Positions 5,440 through 62,112 of a stretch of DNA of 64,000 nt are shown here, piece after piece. Position 1 is the first letter of the stretch. Each line of letters begins with the position of its first letter. The translations under genes were made by a program, and so were the position numbers. This DNA is from Macrostomum hystrix (lineage: Eukaryota > Animalia > Platyhelminthes). Below the pieces are notes generated by a model, which made no database searches, was not told the origin of the DNA, and saw only the letters and a program-made list of their open reading frames with translations. Location of the stretch: positions 2,976,001 to 3,040,000 of the forward strand of contig CATNEN010000012.1 of NCBI GenBank assembly GCA_950097015.1. Direction: 5' to 3'.

Positions 5440-6405
5440 GCAACCCACACCCCATGACTGATGTAGCTAATTGCCTTCCCACACTCTATGGTCGACGTGG
5501 CTAATTGCCATACCACTGCACTCTATGATCGACGTGGCTAATTGCCATTCCACACTCTATGGTTGATGTGGCTAATTTCCATTCCAAACTCCATAGTCGA
5601 TGTGGCTAATTGCCATTCCACACCCCATGATTGATGTAGCTAATTGTCATCCCAACACTCTATGGTCGATGTGGCTAATTGTCATCCCACACTCTATGGT
5701 CGATGTGGCTAGTTGCCATTCCACACCCCATGATTGATGTAGCTAATTGTCATCCCACACTATATGGTCGATGCGGCTAATTGCCATTCCACACCCCATG
5801 ATTGATGTAGCTAATTGTCATCCCACACTCTATGGTTGATGTGGCTAATTTTTATACCACACTTTATGGTCGATGTGGCTAATTGCCATTCCACACTCTA
5901 TGGTTGATGTGGCAAATTGCCATTCCACACCCCATGATTGATGTAGCAATTGTCATCCCACACTGTATGATTGATGTAGCTACTTGCCATTCCCCACTCT
6001 ATGGTTGATGTGGCTAATTGCCATTCCACACCCCATGATTGATTTAGCTAATTGTCATCCCACACTCTATGGTTGATGTGGCTAATTTTTATCCCACACT
6101 TTATGGTCGATGTGGCTAATTGCCATTCCACACTCTATGGTTGATGTGGCAAATTGCCATTCCACACTCTATGGTTGATGTGGCAAATTGCCATTCCACA
6201 CCCCATGATTGATGTAGCAATTGTCATCCCACACTCTATGGTTGATGTGGCTAATTGCCATTCCACACCCCATGATTGATGTAGCAATTGTCATCCCACA
6301 CTCTTTGATTGATGTAGCTAATTGTCATCCCACACTGGATGATTGATGTAGCTACTTGCCATTCCACACTCTATGGTGGATGTGGCTAATCGCCATACCA
6401 CAGTC
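5440..6405. repeat. 34-bp minisatellite (CCACACTCTATGGTTGATGTGGCTAATTGCCATT)
   Basis: Degenerate tandem repetition ending about 70 bp before the first PH exon. Confidence 0.92.
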
Positions 6406-49027: not shown

Positions 49028-49722
49028 GGCAGGGCTTATTCCCACGGTCCAGTGCCAATAATTTCAATTTTATCCACATGGATCTGTGCTGATAATTTTC
49101 TTATCCACATCCACTGCTTATCCACACAACAGCTTGTATGAATAGGTCTAAAACTCTTTATATAGGGCCTAAATATGCTGTGCCATTAATTTTAATTTTA
49201 TCCACTTGGTTCTGTTCTTTGAAATGAGGCCCTTTCAGGTTTGAACATTTTGTTGAACCCTCAAGCCAATAGATCAACAAAGTTGCCAGTGTGTTACGAC
49301 AATATTCTACATTTCAACCTACACATTCATTAACTGACATTAACGTCATCCTTTTAATTATTGTAATAACAACTTACTAAATCTTTTGTCATCGTTATAT
49401 GTTTTCATTTGAATTGTATTGACTTACAACAAAGTAAGAAATCTATCAAAGAAAATTATGTGAGTCAACCAGCATAATTCTAGTCAGCACCAAACTTGTC
49501 ACACATTATACATCATTGTTATTCTTTATACTATGCATTGATAGTGTACACTATACACTATTCTCTGAAGCAAAAGCCTTTTGCTCAGAGAAGAATAGGT
49601 AGGGACTTGTAAGTATACCTATTCATATAAGCTGCTGTGTGGATAAGCAGAAAATTATCGGCACGGATCCATATGGATAAAATTGAAATTATCGGCATGG
49701 GACTGTGGGAATAAGCACTTCC
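49028..49722. mobile_element. MITE family A copy 2 (opposite orientation), 9-bp TSD TTTATTAAT
   Basis: Same TIRs as 45463-46152; TSD at 49019-49027 and 49723-49731. Confidence 0.9.
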
Positions 49723-49869
49723 TTTATTAATAGGTCCTATTTACAAGCAATCTATATTAATGCATTTGCTAGGCACTTGTACATGAATATAAGGGATCCT
49801 AGACACTTTATCATCTTAATCATAATAATAATTGATTACACATGCCCCAATTGGATCAGATATGCAACC

Positions 49870-50120
49870 AACAGCACAGCCGCAGCTAATGTGCAGGGCA
49901 TCTGAAGGCTGTGTACAGCTGTTCAGTCCATGGACTGGGGGGACACCACATACCCTCAATTATCCCAGCTGATGCTGGTACCCATTTAATGGCTGGGTGA
50001 ACTGAAGCAATGCAAAGTTAAGTGTCTTGCTAAAGGACACAAATAGTTCTAGTAGAGTTGGGAATCGAACCCCCGACCTTCAAGTTGTGAGTCCGACGCT
50101 CTAACCACTAGGCTACAACC
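49870..50120 (-). mobile_element. tRNA-derived SINE, family A copy 2 (most complete)
   Basis: Reverse: GGTTGTAGCCTAGTGGTTAGAGCG..GGTTCGATTCCC then GTGTCCTTTAGCAAGACACTTAAC..CACCCAGCCATTAAATGGGTACC. Confidence 0.88.
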
Positions 50121-50128
50121 TCTTAGAA

Positions 50129-50553
50129 TCATCTTACAACTTCATCATCCACTTTGAATGTAGGATACTTCATCATCTAGCCAATCAGCATGCTTTAAAG
50201 TTTGGTCAGTTTGTCATCTACTAATAACAAGCATTGTAGTCTATAGACTCAATTAACAGATGCTTCTGTGTACATGTACAAGTATATGTCAAAATGAAGC
50301 TGAAGTGAGACTGTCCCCTCCTCCTTTCTCATTCTAGACTTGGGACCAGACAATGGCAGAGTTCCGACCACAAAGTTGAAAGATAGGTGCCAACACAATG
50401 TGGGGAGGGGTGTTTCTGTTCTAACTTTGAAAACTTTTATTTTATAGATGACGAAGTATCCACAAGTCTAAGTCACTTCGTCATCTACCCTCTGAGATAT
50501 TGGATAGATGTCATCTTAATGACAAAGTTGTAAGATGACAGTGTCCAGGGACC
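50129..50553. mobile_element. MITE family B copy 2 (reverse, one end eroded)
   Basis: Arms are colinear in reverse with 47032-47210 and 47837-47975; ends GTGTCCAGGGACC. Confidence 0.8.
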
Positions 50554-51849
50554 AAATATAGCATGTATTAGAGATAAAACAAATATTCAGTAAAATTGGT
50601 GCAAAAGTTTATTCTAATAACATCACAAAATGGTGCATGTTGGACAATAGTAGTAGTAGTAGTAGTAGTAATAGTAGTAGTAGACCTGGCTCAGGTAGAG
50701 TACCCATTAGGCCAGTAATGACAAGTATATTTGAAAAGTATGCACAATATAACTTATATTTATGTATTGTGGTGTTATGTATAGACAATATTAGGCCTAT
50801 AAATAATTTTGAATATTAAATCCTACATTGTAAATACAACATGCTAATTCTACATCAGTTTTGTTATAGCTTTAGAGACTGCTAAAGTTCATATGGTCTT
50901 TAAGTTGTCATTTTATCAGTGTACTGATACAACATGTAATATGCAAATAAGCCAAGAATTCTAGTTACTGTTTCCAGAGCAATGTGTCATTGTGGAAATG
51001 TTTTTGCTGTAGCAATTTTGTGCTTAGCAGTTCATTCTAGCAATATGCCAGTTGTGACTAGGCCTAGGCCTATGTCTTGAGATTAAAAAATACTGAAGGT
51101 GCTAAAACTTTATATTTTAGTGACAATGTCACAGTAGTCGTCTGCTCAGTTCCACTCTACCCCACCCCAACTCTAATTGGTTGCTCGCAAAATATGCTCT
51201 CAGTGGGGTGCTTTTTGCAGGAGTTTTAAATAGATGAAAAAATAGCCTAGTACTAAAAAGCAAAGGCATCCAAGTGCCCAGCAACTGATTAGGATTAGCA
51301 TGAATCAACATTCATCACTGAGGCAGTCTAGGCCAGTCTAGGCTAGCCACTGGATATGATTAGAATTTGGCCTAATTTTAAAAAAGCCTATATCAAAGTA
51401 AAAAGTTCTTATTATTAGCTTCCCTATCAAAACTAATCATAGCTAGCTCTAAGGCAAAAAAGTTTCATATTTTTTACATATTACATATATAAAAATAGCA
51501 TGAAACCATATCATTTTAAGTGTGTGATCAAAAGTTTATATGAATAAAAAATTGGTGAATTTTTGTCGGGGTAGAACTTGGCCATATGTGAAGCCAAGAG
51601 CATAACTGTAGCTATTGTCTAGTGAGAATAACTGATTTATGTTTTTTTACAATCCCACTTTTCCTATGTCTTATATTTGAAACTAAATTACACAATTAAC
51701 TATTATTAACCATTATGTTGTATTACGAAATGATAATCACCAAAAAATTTAAATTGATTGGTATATCTAAACAATTTTGTGGTTTAGCTACATATGACTG
51801 TTTAGACAACTAGGTGGTCACCATACTAACTTTTGATTTCCCCATCTGC

Positions 51850-52000
51850 TGCTAGTATTCATTTAACAGGTGGGTAAACTGAAGCAATGCTGAGTTAAGT
51901 GTCTTGCTAAATGACACAAATTGTTTTTATAAAGTCAGGTGTTGAACCCCCAAACCTTTCAGTTATGAGTCTGATGCTAAAGCTATTAAGCTTGTAAAGA
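51850..52000 (-). mobile_element. SINE family A copy 3 (degenerate)
   Basis: GGGTAAACTGAAGCAATGC..AAGTGTCTTGCTAA matches 49990-50040. Confidence 0.7.
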
Positions 52001-52197
52001 CAAGCACATTCAATCTAATATTGATATACAAGCAGAAAAAATCCAATTGTTAAAAAGCTACAACCAAAAATAGAAAATATTTTTTCTGGCCTAACATTGA
52101 ACTTTAGCTCAGTCTATGAAATGAAATAATATTGACAAAATTACATCTTTTTACCCCGATTTCCAGTACTAATCAATCGTACAATCTAGAGACAGCC

Positions 52198-52698
52198 ATG
52201 CCCGTGTTTGTATCGCTGCCAACTGGTGACAAAGTCACCAAGCAAGTCGCCGAAGCTGACACCGTAGCCGATCTTAAAGCCTGGGCCAGCGAACAGTGCG
52301 GCGCCTCGCCCCTGAGCCTAGCCGTGTTCGCCAACTCTGGCGATGCCCTGCCCGATGATGCCCGCATCGCAGAGGTGAGTTGCTTGACGTCTTCTGCAAT
52401 AGCAACAACCCGCTGTATAACTAAAACAATGCTCTATAAAATGCTAACATTCTTGTCAATCTAGGTTGCCACTGACGGCGCCGCCCTGGACGTGCAGCCG
52501 CTGCTACCTGGCGGTAAGGTGCACGGCTCTCTAGCTCGCGCTGGCAAGGTGCGCGGCCAGACACCCAAAGTGGCCAAGCAGGAGAAGCGCAAGTCCAAGA
52601 CTGGTCGGGCTAAGCGCCGCAATCAGTATAACAAGCGCTTCGTGGCCACCGTTAATCTGCCAGGCGGCAGGCGCCGCGGACCCAACGCCAACTCTTGA
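52198..52698 (+). CDS. FAU: Ubiquitin-like FUBI - 40S ribosomal protein S30 (eS30) fusion, 136 aa
   Basis: Exons 52198-52374 and 52465-52698; LPGG|[42 protein letters not shown]. Confidence 0.97.
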
Positions 52699-52834
52699 AA
52701 GACCGGAAGAGATCTAGGACGGACACATCGGTTGATTTGATTGATAGAAAAGACACATTGCGTTTTGGATCATTTGATCATTGTTGGATGTTTGACTAAG
52801 TGGCTAAAATCTTTTTCGGTCAGTTTTGTCTTTA

Positions 52835-52840
52835 AATAAA
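52835..52840 (+). terminator. Polyadenylation signal (AATAAA cluster) of FAU
   Basis: AATAAATAAA about 140 nt after the FAU stop, followed by further AATAAA-like hexamers. Confidence 0.65.
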
Positions 52841-53109
52841 TAAAGAAAATAAAAGTAATAAAAGCCACGGTTCTGAAAGAAAGAATAAGATTTCTTTGGA
52901 TATTCAACTACATTAATACTTTAATGTTCAAAGCGGGCAACAGACAAATCGCAGAAAGTTCCAGATAGTACCATTCCCAAGACGATAACGCAACAAGCTG
53001 TGTAGATATTTTTTTTCGGGTTTAGTTTATCTACTTAGATCACACTATAAAGGTTATAAAATCTCTGTTGCAGCAGAAAGACAGGTCTGAGTTTGTTTAT
53101 CAATTTCAG

Positions 53110-56100
53110 GCAATTCGATCTGCAGCCGCTCTGCTTTTGCGGCGGCATCAGCCGTCGGTTCTGCGCCGTCTGGTGTCCTCCACTGCCAATTCGCCTCCGT
53201 TAACAACGGATATTCATCCTGGCTTGAAGCGTAAATCTTTCAATAGATTAACCGACTCGGATTTAGCCGCCTTTGAAAGCATCGTTGGCCGCGATCACGT
53301 GATTACAGAGCCGGACGATGTACTGCCCTACAATGTGGATTGGATGCGCATCTGCCGCGGTCAGGGTCAATTAGTGCTCCGACCTAGGACTACGGAGGAG
53401 GTTAGCTAGTGTTTTATTGTACTTTTCTATAGTGTTCTGGTTTTTCTCTGCTCGTCATTAATCGGCTATTTTGGCTTGATGACTTTTGGTTTGTTACTGT
53501 CTCTTTCCATCTTACATTCGCTGCAGTCTCCTTTGTTATAATTGGCTACGCATTCCCGATCTTCTGTTTGGCTACGCTTTCCCGATCTTCTGATTGGCTA
53601 CGCATTCCCGATCTTCTGTTTGGCTACGCTTTCCCGATCTTCTGATTGGCTACGCTATCCTGATCTTATTGGCTACGCATTCCCGATCTTCTGATTGGCT
53701 ACGCTATCCTGATCTTATTGGCTACGCATTCCCGATCTTCTGTTTGGCTACGCTTTCCCGATCTTCTGATTGGCTACGCTCTCCTGATCTTATTGGCTAC
53801 GCTCTCCCGATCTTCTGATTGGCGACGCTAACCTGATCTTATTGGCTACGCTTTCCCGATCTTCTGATTGGCTACGCTCTCCCGATCTTCTGTTTGGCTA
53901 CGCTATCCTGATCTTATTGGCTACGCTTTCCCGATCTTCTGATTGGCGACGCTATCCTGATCTTATTGGCTACGCTTTCCCGATCTTCTGATTGGCGACG
54001 CTATCCTGATCTTATTGGCTACGCTCTCCCGATCTTCTGTTTGGCTTCGCTTTTCCGATCTTCTGATTGGCGACGCTATCCTGATCTTATTGGCTACGCT
54101 TTCCCGATCTTCTGATTGGCGACGCTATCCTGATCTTATTGGCTACGCTCTCCCGATCTTCTGTTTGGCTTCGCTTTTCCGATCTTCTGATTGGCGACGC
54201 TATCCTGATCTTATTGGCTACGCTCTCCCGATCTTCTGTTTGGCTACGCTTTTCCGATCTTCTGATTGGCTACGCTATCCTGATCTTATTGGCTACGCTA
54301 TCCTGATCTTATTGGCTACGCTCTCCCGATCTTCTGTTTGGCTACGCTTTCCCAATCTTCTGATTGGCTACGCTATCCTGATCTTATTGGCTACGCTCTC
54401 CCGATCTTCTGTTTGGCTACGCTTTCCCAATCTTCTGATTGGCTACGCTCTCCCGATCTTCTGTTTGGCTACGCTTTTCCGATCTTCTGATTGGCTACGC
54501 TATCCTGATCTTATTGGCTACGCTCTCCCGATCTTCTGTTTCGCTACGCTTTTCCGATCTTCTGATTGGCTACGGTCTCCCGATCTTCTGTTTGGCTACG
54601 CTTTTCCGATCTTCTGATTGGCTACGCTATCCTGATCTTATTGGCTACGCTCTCCCGATCTTCTGTTTGGCTACGCTTTCCCAATCTTCTGATTGGCTAC
54701 GCTATCCTGATCTTATTGGCTACGCTCTCCCGATCTTCTGTTTGGCTACGCTTTCCCAATCTTCTGATTGGCTACGCTCTCCCGATCTTCTGTTTGGCTA
54801 CGCTTTTCCGATCTTCTGATTGGCTACGCTATCCTGATCTTATTGGCTACGCTCTCCCGATCTTCTGTTTCGCTACGCTTTTCCGATCTTCTGATTGGCT
54901 ACGGTCTCCCGATCTTCTGTTTGGCTACGCTTTCCCGATCTTCTGATTGGCTACGCTATCCTGATCTAATTGGCTACGCTCTCCCGATCTTCTGTTTGGC
55001 TACGCTTTCCCAATCTTCTGATTGGCTACGCTATCCTGATCTTATTGGCTACGCTCTCCCGATCTTCTGTTTGGCTACGCTTTCCCAATCTTCTGATTGG
55101 CTACGCTCTCCCGATCTTCTGTTTGGCTACGCTTTCCCAATCTTCTGATTGGCTACGCTCTCCCGATCTTCTGTTTGGCTACGCTTTCCCAATCTTCTGA
55201 TTGGCTACGCTCTCCCGATCTTCTGTTTGGCTACGCTTTTCCGATCTTCTGATTGGCTACGCTATCCTGATCTTATTGGCTACGCTCTCCCGATCTTCTG
55301 TTTCGCTACGCTTTTCCGATCTTCTGATTGGCTACGGTCTCCCGATCTTCTGTTTGGCTACGCTTTCCCGATCTTCTGATTGGCTACGCTATCCTGATCT
55401 AATTGGCTACGCTCTCCCGATCTTCTGTTTCGCTACGCTTTTCCGATCTTCTGATTGGCTACGCTCTCCCGATCTTCTGTTTGGCTACGCTTTCCCGATC
55501 TTCTGATTGGCTACGCTATCCTGATCTAATTGGCTACGCTCTCCCGATCTTCTGATTGGCTACGCTATCCTGATCTTATTGGCTACGCTCTCCCGATCTT
55601 CTGTTTCGCTACGCTTTTCCGATCTTCTGATTGGCTACGCTATCCTGATCTTATTGGCGGTGTGCGGTAGTTTCGTCTTTACACGTTATGCCTTTTATAT
55701 TTTACAGTTTGCGTGTCTGCGTTTACACTTTGTGCGATTTACAGTATGCCTTTACACAGTTTGTGCCCTTTATATTTTACATTTGTTACAGAAAAACGAA
55801 ATAAGCAACATCGTTCAAATTATTCAACTTAAAATTCATAGGCATTAACAATTACATACTTTACATACTTTATATACATAGCAGACAGCTGGCTTCAAGC
55901 CGCAATACAATAATGCTATGAACGTAACTGATAAAAATGTGCAAAATTATAACAAAAAGTATACAAAACTATGGAATATCTATTAAAACGTTTGTTCCAC
56001 TATATGTTCGTGCAATAGTGTTAGTAAAGTAAAAAGACGTACACAAAATATTTGTATTATATATAGTAAACTGAACGTAGGACTAGGGCAGACGAAACGA

Positions 56101-59015
56101 CCGCATCGTATATTGGCAGACGAACTAGGGGCAGACGAAACGACCGTCAACCTTATTGGCAACGCTCTCCCGATCTTCTAATTGGCTACGCTTTCCCGAT
56201 CTTATAATTTGTTACGCTTTCCCGATCTTCTTATTGGCTACACTTTCCCGATCTTATAATTTGTTACGCTTTCCCTATCGTCTTATTGGCTACGCTTTCT
56301 CGATCTTCTAATCGGCTAAATTTCCCGATCTTATAATTTGTTACGCTTTCCTGATCTTCTTATTGGCTACACTTTCCCTATCGTCTTATTGGCTACGCTC
56401 TCCCGATCTTCTAATTGGCTACGCTTTACCGATCTTATAATTTGTTACGCTTTCCCGATCTTCTTATTGGCTACACTTTCCCGATCTTATAATTTGTTAC
56501 GCTTTCCCTATCGTCTTATTGGCTACGCTTTCTCGATCTTCTAATCGGCTACACTTTCCCGATCTTATAATTTGTTACGCTTTCCCGATCTTCTAATCGG
56601 CTACACTTTCCCGATCTTATAATTTGTTACGTTTTCCTGATCTTCTTATTGGCTACACTTTCCCTATCGTCTTATTGGCTACGCTTTCTCGATCTTCTAA
56701 TTGGCTACACTTTCCCGATCTTCTTATTGGTTACGCTTTCTCGATCTTATGAATAGCTGTCTTTGGTTCTCAAAATCTCACATATCTTATTACGTGCCAA
56801 TTTTCTCACCTGTCAAAAAATGTTCACTCAAAACCAATTACAGGTAGCCGCCATTGTTCGCCTCTGCAATGAACGCCGGCTGGCTCTAGTGCCGCAGGGT
56901 GGCAACACCGGCCTAGTTGGCGGCTCTGTGCCACTATTCGACGAGATAGTCGTCTCAACTAGTCGGATGAACAGTTTGATTAGCTTGGATCCGGTCTCCG
57001 GGGTTCTGGTGGCGGAAGCCGGCTGCGTACTGGAGCAGCTTGACAAGGAAGCCGCCTCTGTCGGCCTGATGATGCCGCTGGATCTGGGCGCCAAGGGCAG
57101 CTGCCAGATTGGCGGCAATTTGGCCACCAACGCGGGCGGCCTGCGGCTGCTGCGCTATGGCAGCCTGCGGGGCACCACGCTGGGTCTGGAGGCCGTCCTA
57201 CCAACTGGCCAAGTGCTTGACTGCCTGTCGAAACTGCGCAAAGACAATACCGGCTACGATATTAAACAGCTGCTTATTGGCAGCGAGGGCACACTGGGCA
57301 TTATTACTAAGGCCGCTATTCTGTGCCCGTCTAGGCCTAAGTCTGTCCAGCTAGCCTTTCTGGGTTTGGAATCGTTTCAGGTGAGATTTTTGATGCTCAG
57401 ATTTGCATCCATCAATTTCTTCAGGGACATCATACCCCCGATTGTTCAGGGACACCATACCCCCGATTGTTCAGGGACACCATACCCCCGATTGTTCAGA
57501 CACCATACCCCCGATTGTTCAGGGACACCATACCCCCGATTGTTCAGACACCATACCCCCGATTGTTCAGGGACACCATACCCCCGATTTTTCAGAGACA
57601 CCATACCCCCGATTGTTCAGGGACACCATACCCCGATTCTTCAGACACCATACCCCCGATTGTTCAGGGACACCATACCCCCGATTGTTCAGGGACACCA
57701 TACCCCCGATTTTTCAGAGACACCATACCCCCGATTGTTCAGGGACACCATACCCCGATTCTTCAGACACCATACCCCCGATTGTTCAGGGACACCATAC
57801 CCCCGATTGTTCAGGGACACCATACCCCCGATTGTTCAGGGACACCATACCCCCGATTGTTCAGGGACACCATACCCCCGATTCTTCAGACACCATACCC
57901 CCGATTGTTCAGGGACACCATACCCCCGATTGTTCAGGGACACCATACCCCCGATTGTTCAGGGACACCATACCCCCGATTGTTCAGAGACACCATACCC
58001 CCGATTGTTCAGAGACATCATACCCCCGATTGTTCAGGGACACCATACCCCCGATTGTTCAGAGACACCATACCCCCGATTGTTCAGGGACACCATACCC
58101 CCGATTGTTCAGGCTCACCATACCCCCATTGTTCTGGGACATCATTTCTCCGATTGTTCAGGGATCATTCCCCCATTGTTCAGGGACGCCATCATTCCAA
58201 TTCAGTACATCTTCCTATTTGTCCCATTCAAGGATACTTCACCCAATTATTTAGGGACACTTTGCACTAGCACCAGCCTATTGCAGCTCAAGTAATGCAA
58301 AGCATTCAACAATCGCTAGGCCGTGCTGAACACCTACCGTCTGGCCAGACGCAGCCTCAGCGAGATTCTCTCCGCTTTCGAATTCATCGACGCCGAGTCG
58401 ATGCGGGCGGTGACGCAAAATCTAGGACTGAGCTGTCCTCTAGGTGAGCACAATTTCTACGCCCTAGCCGAAACATCCGGATCCAGCGAGGCGCACGACC
58501 GAGAGAAGCTAGACGCCTTCTTGGACTCGGTGATGTCCGCTGATGTTGGCGCCGCTGATGGCACCGTGGCCCAGGATGCTAGCCAGTTTAGCCGCCTGTG
58601 GGCACTGCGCGAGCGCATTGTTGAAGGCCTATTAGTTGACGGCTACGAGTACAAGTACGATGTTAGCCTGCCCTTAGAAGACATCTATTGCCTAGTGGAG
58701 CACATGCGAACTCGCCTAGCTGGCCGGGTCATCCGCACGGCAGGCTATGGCCATCTGGGTGACGGAAATCTGCACCTGAATTTCACTACCAAGCAGTTCA
58801 ATTCGGATGTGCTAGCTCTAATTGAGCCGCACGTATTTGATTGGGTGCGAGATAGGCGCGGCTCCGTTAGCGCTGAGCACGGCCTCGGCCTGAAGAAGAG
58901 CCAGTACATTAGGCATAGTAAATCAGATCTGGCTGTTAGGATTATGAATCATGTTAAACAACTGTTGGATCCTAATGGCATTATGAATCCCTACAAAGTC
59001 TTACCGGATGTTTGA
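53110..59015 (+). CDS. D2HGDH: D-2-hydroxyglutarate dehydrogenase, mitochondrial (FAD-linked oxidase); no genomic start Met found
   Basis: Exons 53110-53400, 56844-57380, 58320-59015, all phase 0. Motifs [115 protein letters not shown]. Confidence 0.96.
53530..56750. repeat. 23-26-bp intronic minisatellite (TTGGCTACGCTCTCCCGATCTTCTGA) interrupted by a MITE
   Basis: Arrays 53530-55658 and 56153-56750; 329-bp higher-order repeat between 54439 and 54768. Confidence 0.95.
55659..56152. mobile_element. MITE family D, GG...CC ends, 8-bp TSD TTATTGGC
   Basis: Left GGTGTGCGGTAGTTTCGTCT versus reverse of right GGTTGACGGTCGTTTCGTCT; TSD at 55651-55658 and 56153-56160. Confidence 0.8.
57420..58150. 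repeat. About 25-bp intronic minisatellite (GGGACACCATACCCCCGATTGTTCA)
   Basis: Direct repetition in D2HGDH intron 57381-58319. Confidence 0.94.
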
Positions 59016-59299
59016 CTCTAAATAACTGTGCTGCTGTCTTTTTATTTAGTTTTTTTTCTGACTTCAAAGACAGGTAATTGCCTAGCGTATGTGCAATATT
59101 CGAGCTGAGCCCTGATATGTCAAAGATCTGGGGCAAAGCAAACTAAAATGACATGCGGGTCATAGACTCAGAGAGAGAATCTAATATACGACAGTGGGTG
59201 GGATAGGTATAGATTAGATGGATGGTAGAGATGATAGACGTGAGATGAGGGATAAGACAAAAATATGAGTCAAATGAGGATGAGACATGAAAGAGATGA

Positions 59300-60380
59300 G
59301 ACACATCAGAAATAAGGCACATCAGGCATGAGGCACATCATGCATGAGGCACATCAGGCATGAGGCACATCAGAGATAAGACACATCAGGCATGAGGCAC
59401 ATGAGGCACGTCAGAGATGAGACACAGAGATGAGGCACATCAGAGATGAGGCACGTCAGAGATAAGGCACATCAGGCATGAGGCACATCAGAGATAAGAC
59501 ACATCAGGCATGAGGCACATGAGGCACGTCAGAGATGAGACACAGAGATGAGGCACATCAGAGATGAGGCACGTCAGAGATAAGGCACATCAGGCATGAG
59601 GTACATCAGAGATGAGGCACGTCAGAGATAAGGCACATCAGGCATGAGGCACATGAGGCACGTCAGAGATAAGGCACATCAGGCATGAGGCACATCAGAG
59701 ATAAGACACATCAGGCATGAGGCACATGAGGCACGTCAGAGATGAGACACAGAGATGAGGCACATCAGAGATGAGGCACGTCAGAGATAAGGCACATCAG
59801 GCATGAGGCACATCAGAGATAAGACACATCAGGCATGAGGCACATGAGGCACGTCAGAGATGAGACACAGAGATGAGGCACATCAGAGATGAGGCACGTC
59901 AGAGATAAGGCACATCAGGCATGAGGTACATCAGAGATGAGGCACGTCAGAGATAAGGCACATCAGGCATGAGGCACATGAGGCACGTCAGAGATGAGAC
60001 ACAGAGATGAGGCACATCAGAGATGAGGCACGTCAGAGATAAGGCACATCAGGCATGAGGTACATCAGAGATGAGGCACGTCAGAGATAAGGCACATCAG
60101 GCATGAGGCACATGAGGCACGTCAGAGATGAGACACAGAGATGAGACACATCAGGCATGAGGCACGTCAGAGATAAGGCACATCAGGCATGAGGTACATC
60201 AGAGATGAGGCACGTCAGAGATAAGGCACATCAGGCATGAGGCACATGAGGCACGTCAGAGATGAGACACAGAGATGAGACACATCAGGCATGAGGCACG
60301 TCAGAGATGAGACACATCAGGCATGAGGCACGTCAGAGATGAGACACATCAGGCATGAGGCACGTCAGAGATGAGACATG
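59300..60380. repeat. 16-bp-based intergenic minisatellite (GAGATGAGGCACATCA and variants)
   Basis: Direct repetition; the reverse strand shares GTCTCATCTC with the 22690/23250 arrays. Confidence 0.92.
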
Positions 60381-60854
60381 AAAGTGTTGGAAGGAGGCGT
60401 TGGCCTGCAGTTTTGAGTTTGCCGACCCATTGTCAAGATTGATTTATAATCCCTGTGTTACTAGCGTCTTTCTACCGTCCAAAATATTTTCATTATATTT
60501 TGTGATATAACTTCCAATAATTTGTGAAATCTTTGGTTTGCTTAAATGACCTTCGTTCGCGGTAAGTGACCGATTATGATACAATTTATCCATAATGATT
60601 TTTTAATGCGATTGTCCGATTGACGATTTTTAGTAAATAGATTTCCTATACATAGATTCGGAAAATTGTAACTATTTCTGTCTTAAGCGTTTTCTCTTAT
60701 ACTCGTTAACTGTCATACTGTGTCTTAATGCAGGAAATACTCGTAGTTGGGTTTTAAGCAACGATTAGAAATCACTAGATCATGGTCGCTAAACACGATT
60801 TTAGATTTACAGCTGCCAATCGCTGTCACTGTCGCCAGGTGCGCCTACAGGTTG

Positions 60855-62035
60855 TTAGGTGGCGCGCTCCACATATTCAACATTCAGCGAGATACACTTC
60901 TGGTTGCGTTCGATCAGCTTGTCAAAGCCAGCTTTCCAGTAGTTGGCATCAAACTGATTCAGGGATTTTTTGTCTGCATGAATAATCTCATCTCGATTCG
61001 TAAAAATCTTGCCGCGCATTGGCATCCTCATCGGACCGAATAAGTGAAAGTCAGCGATGACGAGGTCAGGACTGTAGGCAGGTGGTGCAACTGGTGGTGC
61101 AACCAAGCTCTTCCACCTTGGCTTTCGTCTGAGCGGCTGCGTGAGGTCGCGCATTGTCCCAAAGGTTGCGCGACCTCTCGACCTCACACCACATGCGTCA
61201 AAACACACAGTGCACATGACACTCTGCGTCCAGGCCGACTTCATTGCCTTTTGGTGAGGGTGGCAGCCTCTAGGGCCCCAATGCATTGACTGCTGCTTTG
61301 TCTGTGGCTGGAACATGGGCAGCGGTGTCTCGTTCAGCTCCTTGAATTTGATGTCGCCAATGTCATTCCAAAGCGCCAAGTTCTCCAGTAATGCACACGA
61401 GCTTTCCTGTGTTGCTGTCAGCACACGCGGAACCCACTTCGCGCAGATCTTTGAGTATCCCGCATGTTGCAGAATGCGGGACACAGGCGAATTGTGGATA
61501 CCACACACGCTCTCCATTTCACGTACACTCGCAGACGGATTATCTTTCAAATATTTAAGGACAGCAGTCGCTTTGTCTTGTCCTGTGCTCGAGCGTGGGC
61601 GGCCAGATCGAAGGGCATCAGCAGCATCAGTAACACCATCAGCAGCGAGTCGATGATGCTCGAACACTTGCGTGCGACCAAGAGCATGAACACCAACTAC
61701 AAGGCGCACCTTATTAAAGGTCTGCGTCGCTGTTTTACCCTCTCGTTGACATGCCATGATAAAGTGGCGCTGACTCTCCTTAGACCCATTATTTTTGGTC
61801 GACTCATTTCGTCACTATCACAGCTAAATAGTGTCGACATCTAAATCGTGTCTGCAGCTCTTTAAGGTTGAACCTTGCTTTATCTCTCACGTAGGCTGCG
61901 GTAGACTCGTGTGCACAAAATTCAAGGAAACATTTTTTCTCTGGCCAGGCCAGGTATAATTAGATTTTCAGCCTAATCAGACTCAATTTGTACTCAGGAC
62001 AAACAATAATCCGGAAACTTTTGCAGCACCCCTCG
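60855..62035 (-). mobile_element. Decayed mariner (Tc1/mariner) element: internally deleted transposase ORF 61757-60855 and 5' TIR
   Basis: Mariner motifs GRPRS, KWVPRVLT, PAYSPDLVIADFHLF, GFDKLIER..KCI...EYVE; TIR (TA)CGAGGGGTGCTGCAAAAGTTTCCGG at 62035-62011. No second TIR seen. Confidence 0.88.
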
Positions 62036-62112
62036 TATAAATACAAATTTCAGCAGCGATTCTGTACTTTTCAAGCCTACATTCGCCATTAAACAAGCAA
62101 ACAAATAGTAAA

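Follow-up and report, generated by a model that had tools for sequence, protein, structure and literature searches.

A D-2-hydroxyglutarate dehydrogenase gene of the flatworm Macrostomum hystrix that lacks a start codon and probably obtains it from the trans-spliced leader

The stretch of DNA of the free-living macrostomorph Macrostomum hystrix that we analyzed (64,000 nucleotides (nt), hereafter the window; assembly GCA_950097015.1, contig CATNEN010000012.1, positions 2,976,001 to 3,040,000, forward strand) contains two adjacent genes on the same strand, namely, FAU, which encodes a ubiquitin-like protein fused to ribosomal protein S30, and D2HGDH, which encodes D-2-hydroxyglutarate dehydrogenase, an FAD-linked oxidase. 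The D2HGDH gene has no ATG at its beginning, and its start codon is probably supplied by the AUG at the end of the spliced leader (SL) that is added by trans-splicing. The features of this locus, with positions counted from the first letter of the window, are the following.

52160..52166, plus strand: SL trans-splice acceptor of FAU (tttccAG), which fits the published motif [T/C]TNCAG
52167..52197, plus strand: 5' untranslated region (UTR) of FAU, in which the leader AUG opens an upstream open reading frame (ORF) of two codons (AUG-UAC-UAA)
52198..52374, plus strand: FAU exon 1, the divergent ubiquitin-like half, 59 codons, phase 0 (contigs, sequence, weak Pfam match)
52375..52464, plus strand: FAU intron, GT..AG (joint present in contigs of 4/4 runs)
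52465..52698, plus strand: FAU exon 2, the ribosomal protein S30 half, with the stop codon (Pfam Ribosomal_S30)
52699..52883, plus strand: 3' UTR of FAU, with AATAAA at 52835, 52848 and 52857
52884..53102, plus strand: spacer, intercistronic or D2HGDH outron (no contig, no tandem repeat, no conservation with M. lignano DNA)
53103..53109, plus strand: trans-splice acceptor of D2HGDH (atttcAG), used in contigs of runs X6 and X7 and fitting [T/C]TNCAG
53110..53400, plus strand: D2HGDH exon 1, 97 codons, phase 0 at both ends (contigs and gene model)
53110..53214, plus strand: presequence-like N-terminus without ATG (composition; precedes the segment alignable to the human structure)
53401..56843, plus strand: D2HGDH intron 1, with arrays of a 26-nt tandem repeat (gene model, repeat analysis)
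56844..57380, plus strand: D2HGDH exon 2, FAD_binding_4 (gene model, Pfam)
57381..58319, plus strand: D2HGDH intron 2, with an array of a 25-nt tandem repeat (gene model, repeat analysis)
58320..59015, plus strand: D2HGDH exon 3, FAD-oxidase_C and the stop codon (gene model, Pfam)

Exon 2 of FAU (start ATG, 52198-52200; stop TGA, 52696-52698) matches Ribosomal_S30 in Pfam at 5.2e-27; the ubiquitin-like half yields a weak Pfam match (16 bits, under the cut-off) and fits by position and length. In D2HGDH, FAD_binding_4 is recognized in exon 2 (4e-33) and FAD-oxidase_C in exon 3 (2e-52). Exon 2 is 93% identical to that of Macrostomum lignano and 65-74% identical to those of other eukaryotes, mostly animals, and exon 1 aligns to human 6LPN. 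The gene model comprises 507 codons and a stop, that is, 508 residues with an added Met. The protein database contains no full-length D2HGDH of this species, and the best matches are those of M. lignano. The introns of D2HGDH harbor tandem arrays at 53541-55652 and 56155-56748 (26-nt unit, about 84 and 23 copies) and at 57420-58192 (25-nt unit, about 32 copies), which give rise to long spurious ORFs such as the 510-codon ORF 56763-58295, in which exon 2 is fused to translated repeat; the FAU intron of M. lignano likewise contains a tandem array.

Exon 1 of D2HGDH opens with GCA at 53110 (its first letters are given as GCAATTCG / GCAATTCGATC), 411 nt past the FAU stop and 270 nt past the first AATAAA, and is followed after 53400 by the donor GTTAGC. 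Upstream of the acceptor, the frame is open as far as the TAG at 53023, with no ATG in between, and the first in-frame ATG is found at 53344-53346, corresponding to residue 79 when the added Met is counted. Only two ATGs are present in the spacer, and both run into stops, that at 52788 after M-F-D and that at 52924 after 14 codons, at a TAG. The initial annotation had given the same spacings, splice site (53109/53110) and ATGs (the in-frame one at about 53344), and on re-reading of the sequence all of its coordinates proved to be correct, including that of an alternative acceptor at 53073. There are, in all, three in-frame alternatives, 53072-53073, 53075-53076 and 53090-53091, of which 53073 and 53076 would add acidic residues to the protein (MQKDRSEF...); among the contigs listed, the only D2HGDH acceptor used is 53109. 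The absence of the ATG is more than chance because the contigs use this exact acceptor and the M. lignano orthologue lacks an ATG as well.

The 5' end of the mRNA can be read from Logan RNA contigs of four runs from two studies, which were aligned to 49501-53500. The D2HGDH contigs from X6 (1708 nt) and X7 (1690 nt) are near-full-length; in both, the aligned part begins at 53109, the acceptor G, and extends to the donor of exon 1, and the length that is left corresponds to exons 2 and 3 with a 3' UTR of about 160 nt. Immediately 5' of 53109, both contigs carry exactly 22 unaligned letters that have no match in the 3.6 kb upstream. With this foreign 5' end, the acceptor that the initial annotation had proposed is seen to be used in mature RNA. 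Since the alignment begins on the acceptor G, the RNA letter that precedes GCA is G, as it is in a leader ending in ...CATG. In contig depth, FAU (about 1100-2500) and D2HGDH (about 43) differ, but depth of this kind cannot rank genes, so these figures were not used.

The contigs of FAU show what the foreign end is likely to be. In 4/4 runs, they start at 52166, the G of the FAU acceptor, and carry 21-26 unaligned 5' letters that read ...TACTGCGAAGACTCAATTTATTGCAT, up to 26 of which are positions 9-34 of the published 35-nt M. lignano leader, a leader that ends in ATG (published end, ...TTATTGCATG; PMC8629364). The FAU tails match the leader up to ...TTGCAT, and the final leader G coincides with the acceptor G at 52166, so FAU itself is trans-spliced, and the claim that the leader ends in AUG, from which the initial annotation had started, is borne out. 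The geometry of the D2HGDH contigs is identical to that of these leader-bearing FAU contigs. Their 22 letters are taken as the leader because a 31-mer graph leaves 21-26 letters of a sequence that is common to thousands of mRNAs; a unique 5' exon is disfavoured because two independent runs would not both cut it to 22 letters. No copy of the leader or of an SL RNA gene was detected in the window with 3 mismatches allowed, and Rfam reported no RNA family in the window.

Taken at face value, these observations suggest that both FAU and D2HGDH would be matured by trans-splicing of the 35-nt, AUG-terminated leader of the genus, with different consequences for the two mRNAs. At FAU, the leader AUG runs into a stop almost immediately, and translation would begin at the ATG that belongs to the gene, 29 nt further on. 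At D2HGDH, the leader would be joined at 53109/53110 to codon 2 (GCA), and its AUG would become Met1 of the 508-residue protein. The exon starts on a codon boundary, so that a leader AUG would be in frame, with no stop in between and no other AUG upstream in the mRNA; with the leader joined to codon 2 and no ATG in the genomic sequence, the leader AUG would be the only possible initiator. We therefore consider it probable that the start codon of D2HGDH is supplied by the trans-spliced leader, and the sequence of such an mRNA predicts that ribosomes would start there. The Macrostomum leader probably includes its terminal ATG as a start codon (PMC10468722), and every reported flatworm leader ends in AUG (PMC9851317, PMC12582326).

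Comparison with M. lignano lends further support to this reading of D2HGDH. All 7 annotated D2HGDH proteins of this species, from two annotations, are without an initiator Met (NCBI entries PAA70035.1, PAA70026.1 and PAA69983.1, which are named partial; UniProt A0A1I8H6V4 and relatives), and they begin at, or a few codons from, the homologous Ala. In three genomic copies, exon 1 contains no ATG between the in-frame TGA and the donor, and Leu occupies the position of Met79 of the window. The whole proteins are 83.6% identical, whereas the presequence has diverged, with about 60% identity across exon 1. That the start-less state is common to both congeners despite this divergence argues against an assembly error as well as against an internal start. 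FAU lies directly upstream of D2HGDH in 3/3 M. lignano copies, and the order of S30/FAU, D2HGDH and a coiled-coil/zinc-ribbon gene is the same in three M. lignano contigs and in the window, where the counterpart of the third gene begins at about 62185. At the DNA level, nothing aligns with M. lignano beyond the coding exons and some 50 nt in the 3' UTR of FAU. JGI metagenome contigs contained no exact match to the initial 26 nt of D2HGDH exon 1, and nothing was found for the locus names or D2HGDH in the supplementary tables of M. lignano publications.

At FAU, the homologous acceptor of M. lignano (L001, about 6078-6116) places the leader AUG in AUG-UAG. The immediate stop after the leader AUG thus appears, from the two sequences, to be a conserved neutralising device ahead of the gene's own start. 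The base before that start, 52197, is C in the window and in the X6 and X7 contigs (organism C) and T in the X1 and X2 contigs (organisms A and B), which is likely a strain or species difference.

The part of D2HGDH that would follow the leader AUG looks like an Arg-rich, acid-free presequence of the mitochondrial type, about 35 residues in length. As the initial annotation had noted from the composition, this segment is rich in Arg and free of acidic residues: the first 34 residues after the added Met include 5 Arg and have a charge of +5, and no acidic residue occurs before position 35. The solved human enzyme (a crystal construct) aligns from residue 39 onward only. Both composition and position support a presequence, which would direct import into mitochondria. 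Moreover, the xDW motif is located at residue 76 with one Met added, within the range of 72-116 that is observed in 11 animal orthologues possessing a Met of their own, which suggests that nothing beyond one Met is missing. A 10-residue stretch of this N-terminus fits the loose R-10 pattern, which we take to be a signature of two-step presequence cleavage.

Several observations weigh against the account given so far. The identification of the 22 letters as the leader is strongly inferred from their length and geometry and not from the letters themselves, and contigs of this kind reveal neither minor forms nor the ends of RNAs nor precursors. In helical hydrophobic moment, the N-terminus does not stand out from shuffled versions of itself, 478 of 2000 of which attain its value. 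In the three copies of the Mlig_3_7 assembly, the homologue of the acceptor A reads T (ttcCTG|GCC). The sites homologous to the D2HGDH acceptor are as follows.

L001, 7992-8000: ttcCTG site, Mlig_3_7
L002, 4977-4985: ttcCTG site, Mlig_3_7
L003, 4971-4979: ttcCTG site, Mlig_3_7

The UniProt models from an older M. lignano assembly start with F-Q, which implies ttcCAG, a one-base difference between assemblies, and an in-frame AG that is located 27 nt further on in M. lignano would yield M-LLLRRRP.

Three other origins of the start codon have to be considered. As the 22 letters are known by length and place, not by sequence, they could conceivably represent a small cis-spliced 5' exon with an ATG of its own that is joined to 53110, in which case the leader AUG would not be the initiator. 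Among the joints listed, however, the stretch from FAU to D2HGDH (52100-53500) contains the FAU intron only, and none leads to 49501-53108, despite the presence elsewhere of joints with sides of 21-23 letters; it follows that the 22 letters come neither from FAU exon 1 nor from the spacer or the 3.6 kb upstream, and the absence of a cis-spliced ATG exon that the initial annotation had assumed holds within that distance. The number of letters is the same in both runs and falls inside the FAU leader range of 21-26, GCA is preceded by a G, which is also the last letter of the leader, and the N-terminal length is complete with one Met. A micro-exon between the leader and exon 1, with which the tail would exceed the lengths found at FAU, was rejected on the evidence of joints and tail length, and we regard a cis-spliced start as improbable. 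An ATG could also be borrowed from FAU itself, by cis-splicing of the FAU exon 1 donor to the D2HGDH acceptor to form an in-frame ubiquitin-like-D2HGDH fusion: the phases agree (phase 0 in both), FAU exon 1 also ends in G, and a shared exon would likewise be shortened in a 31-mer graph. Yet among the joints listed, that from 52374 to 53110 is missing in 4/4 runs, although joints with sides of similar length are listed, and the fusion would bury the presequence; this candidate was rejected accordingly and is the least credible of those considered here.

The remaining alternative is internal initiation, either at Met79 or at some non-AUG codon, which would yield a protein lacking a presequence, or else that this copy is a pseudogene truncated at the 5' end. 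An in-frame ATG is indeed available at 53344, but its counterpart in M. lignano encodes Leu in an exon 1 that is free of ATG, and a start at Met79 would drop about 40 conserved residues with counterparts in the human structure, on which grounds initiation at Met79 was rejected. A pseudogene is hard to reconcile with an intact D2HGDH gene that yields a spliced, near-full-length RNA of about 1.7 kb. Both versions of this alternative, taken together, seem highly improbable to us.

Whether FAU and D2HGDH also constitute an operon is a separate issue. The FAU contigs end at 52868 and at 52882-52883, 11-26 nt past the last AATAAA; the 3' end of FAU is taken from these contig ends, which are no proof of a poly(A) site. 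From there to the D2HGDH acceptor, 226-241 nt remain, all repeat-free. In M. lignano, operons have been delineated as adjacent trans-spliced genes with a repeat-adjusted distance of less than 1 kb; intergenic distances peak near 100 bp, and 15% of all genes and 40% of the trans-spliced genes belong to operons (Ustyantsev and Berezikov 2021, PMC8629364). FAU and D2HGDH, being adjacent on the same strand and both trans-spliced, fall within this class, which is a distance-based one, and so does the M. lignano pair, in which the spacer is about 800 nt long, 353 nt of this being tandem repeat. The locus-tag prefixes of M. lignano mark clusters of similar transcripts rather than operon membership and were not used here.

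In the view of the initial annotation, a ribosomal-protein promoter would drive a dicistron, so that both genes would be released from a single precursor beginning upstream of FAU. We lean slightly toward such a dicistronic precursor. Two observations speak against it: no contig of 4/4 runs covers 52883-53108, and two TATA-like words, near 53045 and 53055, precede the acceptor by 50-65 nt, so that a separate D2HGDH promoter is possible. In that case, the leader would still provide the AUG, and D2HGDH would be transcribed from its own promoter within the 226-241 nt spacer, with a short outron removed by trans-splicing; about 60% of the trans-spliced genes of M. lignano are outside operons (PMC8629364). 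An empty spacer is not evidence of absence because contigs drop rare forms. The TATA-like words are not kept in M. lignano, although no non-coding DNA is kept there, and the spacer comparison is uninformative on promoters because the non-coding DNA is too diverged; the adjacency of the two genes, by contrast, is kept. All things considered, a promoter of its own for D2HGDH is a serious alternative, if a somewhat less likely one.

The mechanism by which a leader provides the initiator AUG has been known since Cheng et al. 2006, and D2HGDH is an ordinary further case that leaves our knowledge of this mechanism unchanged. What it adds is one RNA-supported case, conserved in two congeners, of a mitochondrial enzyme that would rely wholly on trans-splicing for its synthesis, and a gene pair in which two known fates of the leader AUG stand side by side. 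The initial annotation had held that mitochondrial targeting of D2HGDH would depend on trans-splicing, which agrees with the present results but is too narrow because, as predicted here, synthesis of the whole functional protein, not its targeting alone, depends on the leader AUG. The same reading explains why D2HGDH of M. lignano was deposited as 5'-partial. In trans-splicing flatworms, gene models should permit starts at the leader AUG, without which intact genes are mistaken for truncated ones and targeting signals are missed.

A more far-reaching possibility, which we consider doubtful, is that leader-AUG starts are enriched among the nuclear genes for mitochondrial proteins in Macrostomum and that FAU-D2HGDH is a conserved operon with both fates of the AUG. 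In such genes, the ATG could be lost easily because a presequence tolerates almost any N-terminal sequence. If there is such enrichment, SL trans-splicing would be an obligatory shared step for part of the mitochondrial proteome, and if the operon is conserved, the leader AUG would be silenced by an immediate stop in the first cistron and would serve as Met1 in the second.

Two other features of the vicinity deserve mention. The gap between D2HGDH and the next gene (59016-62112) is about 3.1 kb in the window, compared to about 1 kb in M. lignano, and includes a minus-strand ORF of 300 codons (60855-61757) without a Pfam match; this may be an inserted mobile element. Upstream of FAU, a repeat is present at 49900-50125 and, in a degenerate second copy, at 51850-51990. 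Its core resembles the reverse complement of a tRNA (...GGTTCGATTCCC...), no tRNA was called in either copy by ARAGORN and Rfam, and hundreds of RNA contigs align to the copy at 49900-50125 with 90-95% likeness and many variable joints. This is probably a high-copy, tRNA-derived short interspersed element.

The use of a leader AUG as Met1 is not without parallels. Perhaps the closest in mechanism are the leader-AUG mRNAs of Schistosoma mansoni, in which the leader likewise has a terminal AUG, the ORF lacks an ATG and is in phase with the acceptor, and the leader AUG becomes Met1; according to the work of Cheng et al. 2006 as related in PMC9851317 and PMC12582326, 28% of the trans-spliced mRNAs of this species have the leader AUG in frame, and more than 40 cDNAs depend on it for the start of translation. 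The organism there is a trematode, whereas here it is a free-living macrostomorph, D2HGDH does not come from that work (Cheng, Cohen, Ndegwa and Davis 2006, J Biol Chem 281:733), and translation was tested there with reporters, whereas here it is predicted from sequence and contigs. The D2HGDH genes of M. lignano are the nearest by descent: they are orthologous, have FAU upstream, and encode Ala at the homologous codon without a preceding Met; the differences lie in the diverged presequence, in the spacer of about 800 nt with its 353-nt repeat, and in an acceptor base that varies between assemblies. With the M. lignano operons, a class defined by distance alone, the pair described here shares the arrangement of same-strand neighbours, both trans-spliced and less than 1 kb apart, as well as the trans-splicing of the first gene, as in 82% of those operons (PMC8629364). 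Finally, as in the SL2 operons of Caenorhabditis elegans, the 3' end of the upstream gene is close to the downstream trans-splice acceptor. By contrast, only one type of leader exists in Macrostomum, where a specialised SL2 is lacking, and the nematode leader is without a terminal AUG, so it supplies no Met1, the role that the leader probably plays in the D2HGDH mRNA of M. hystrix.

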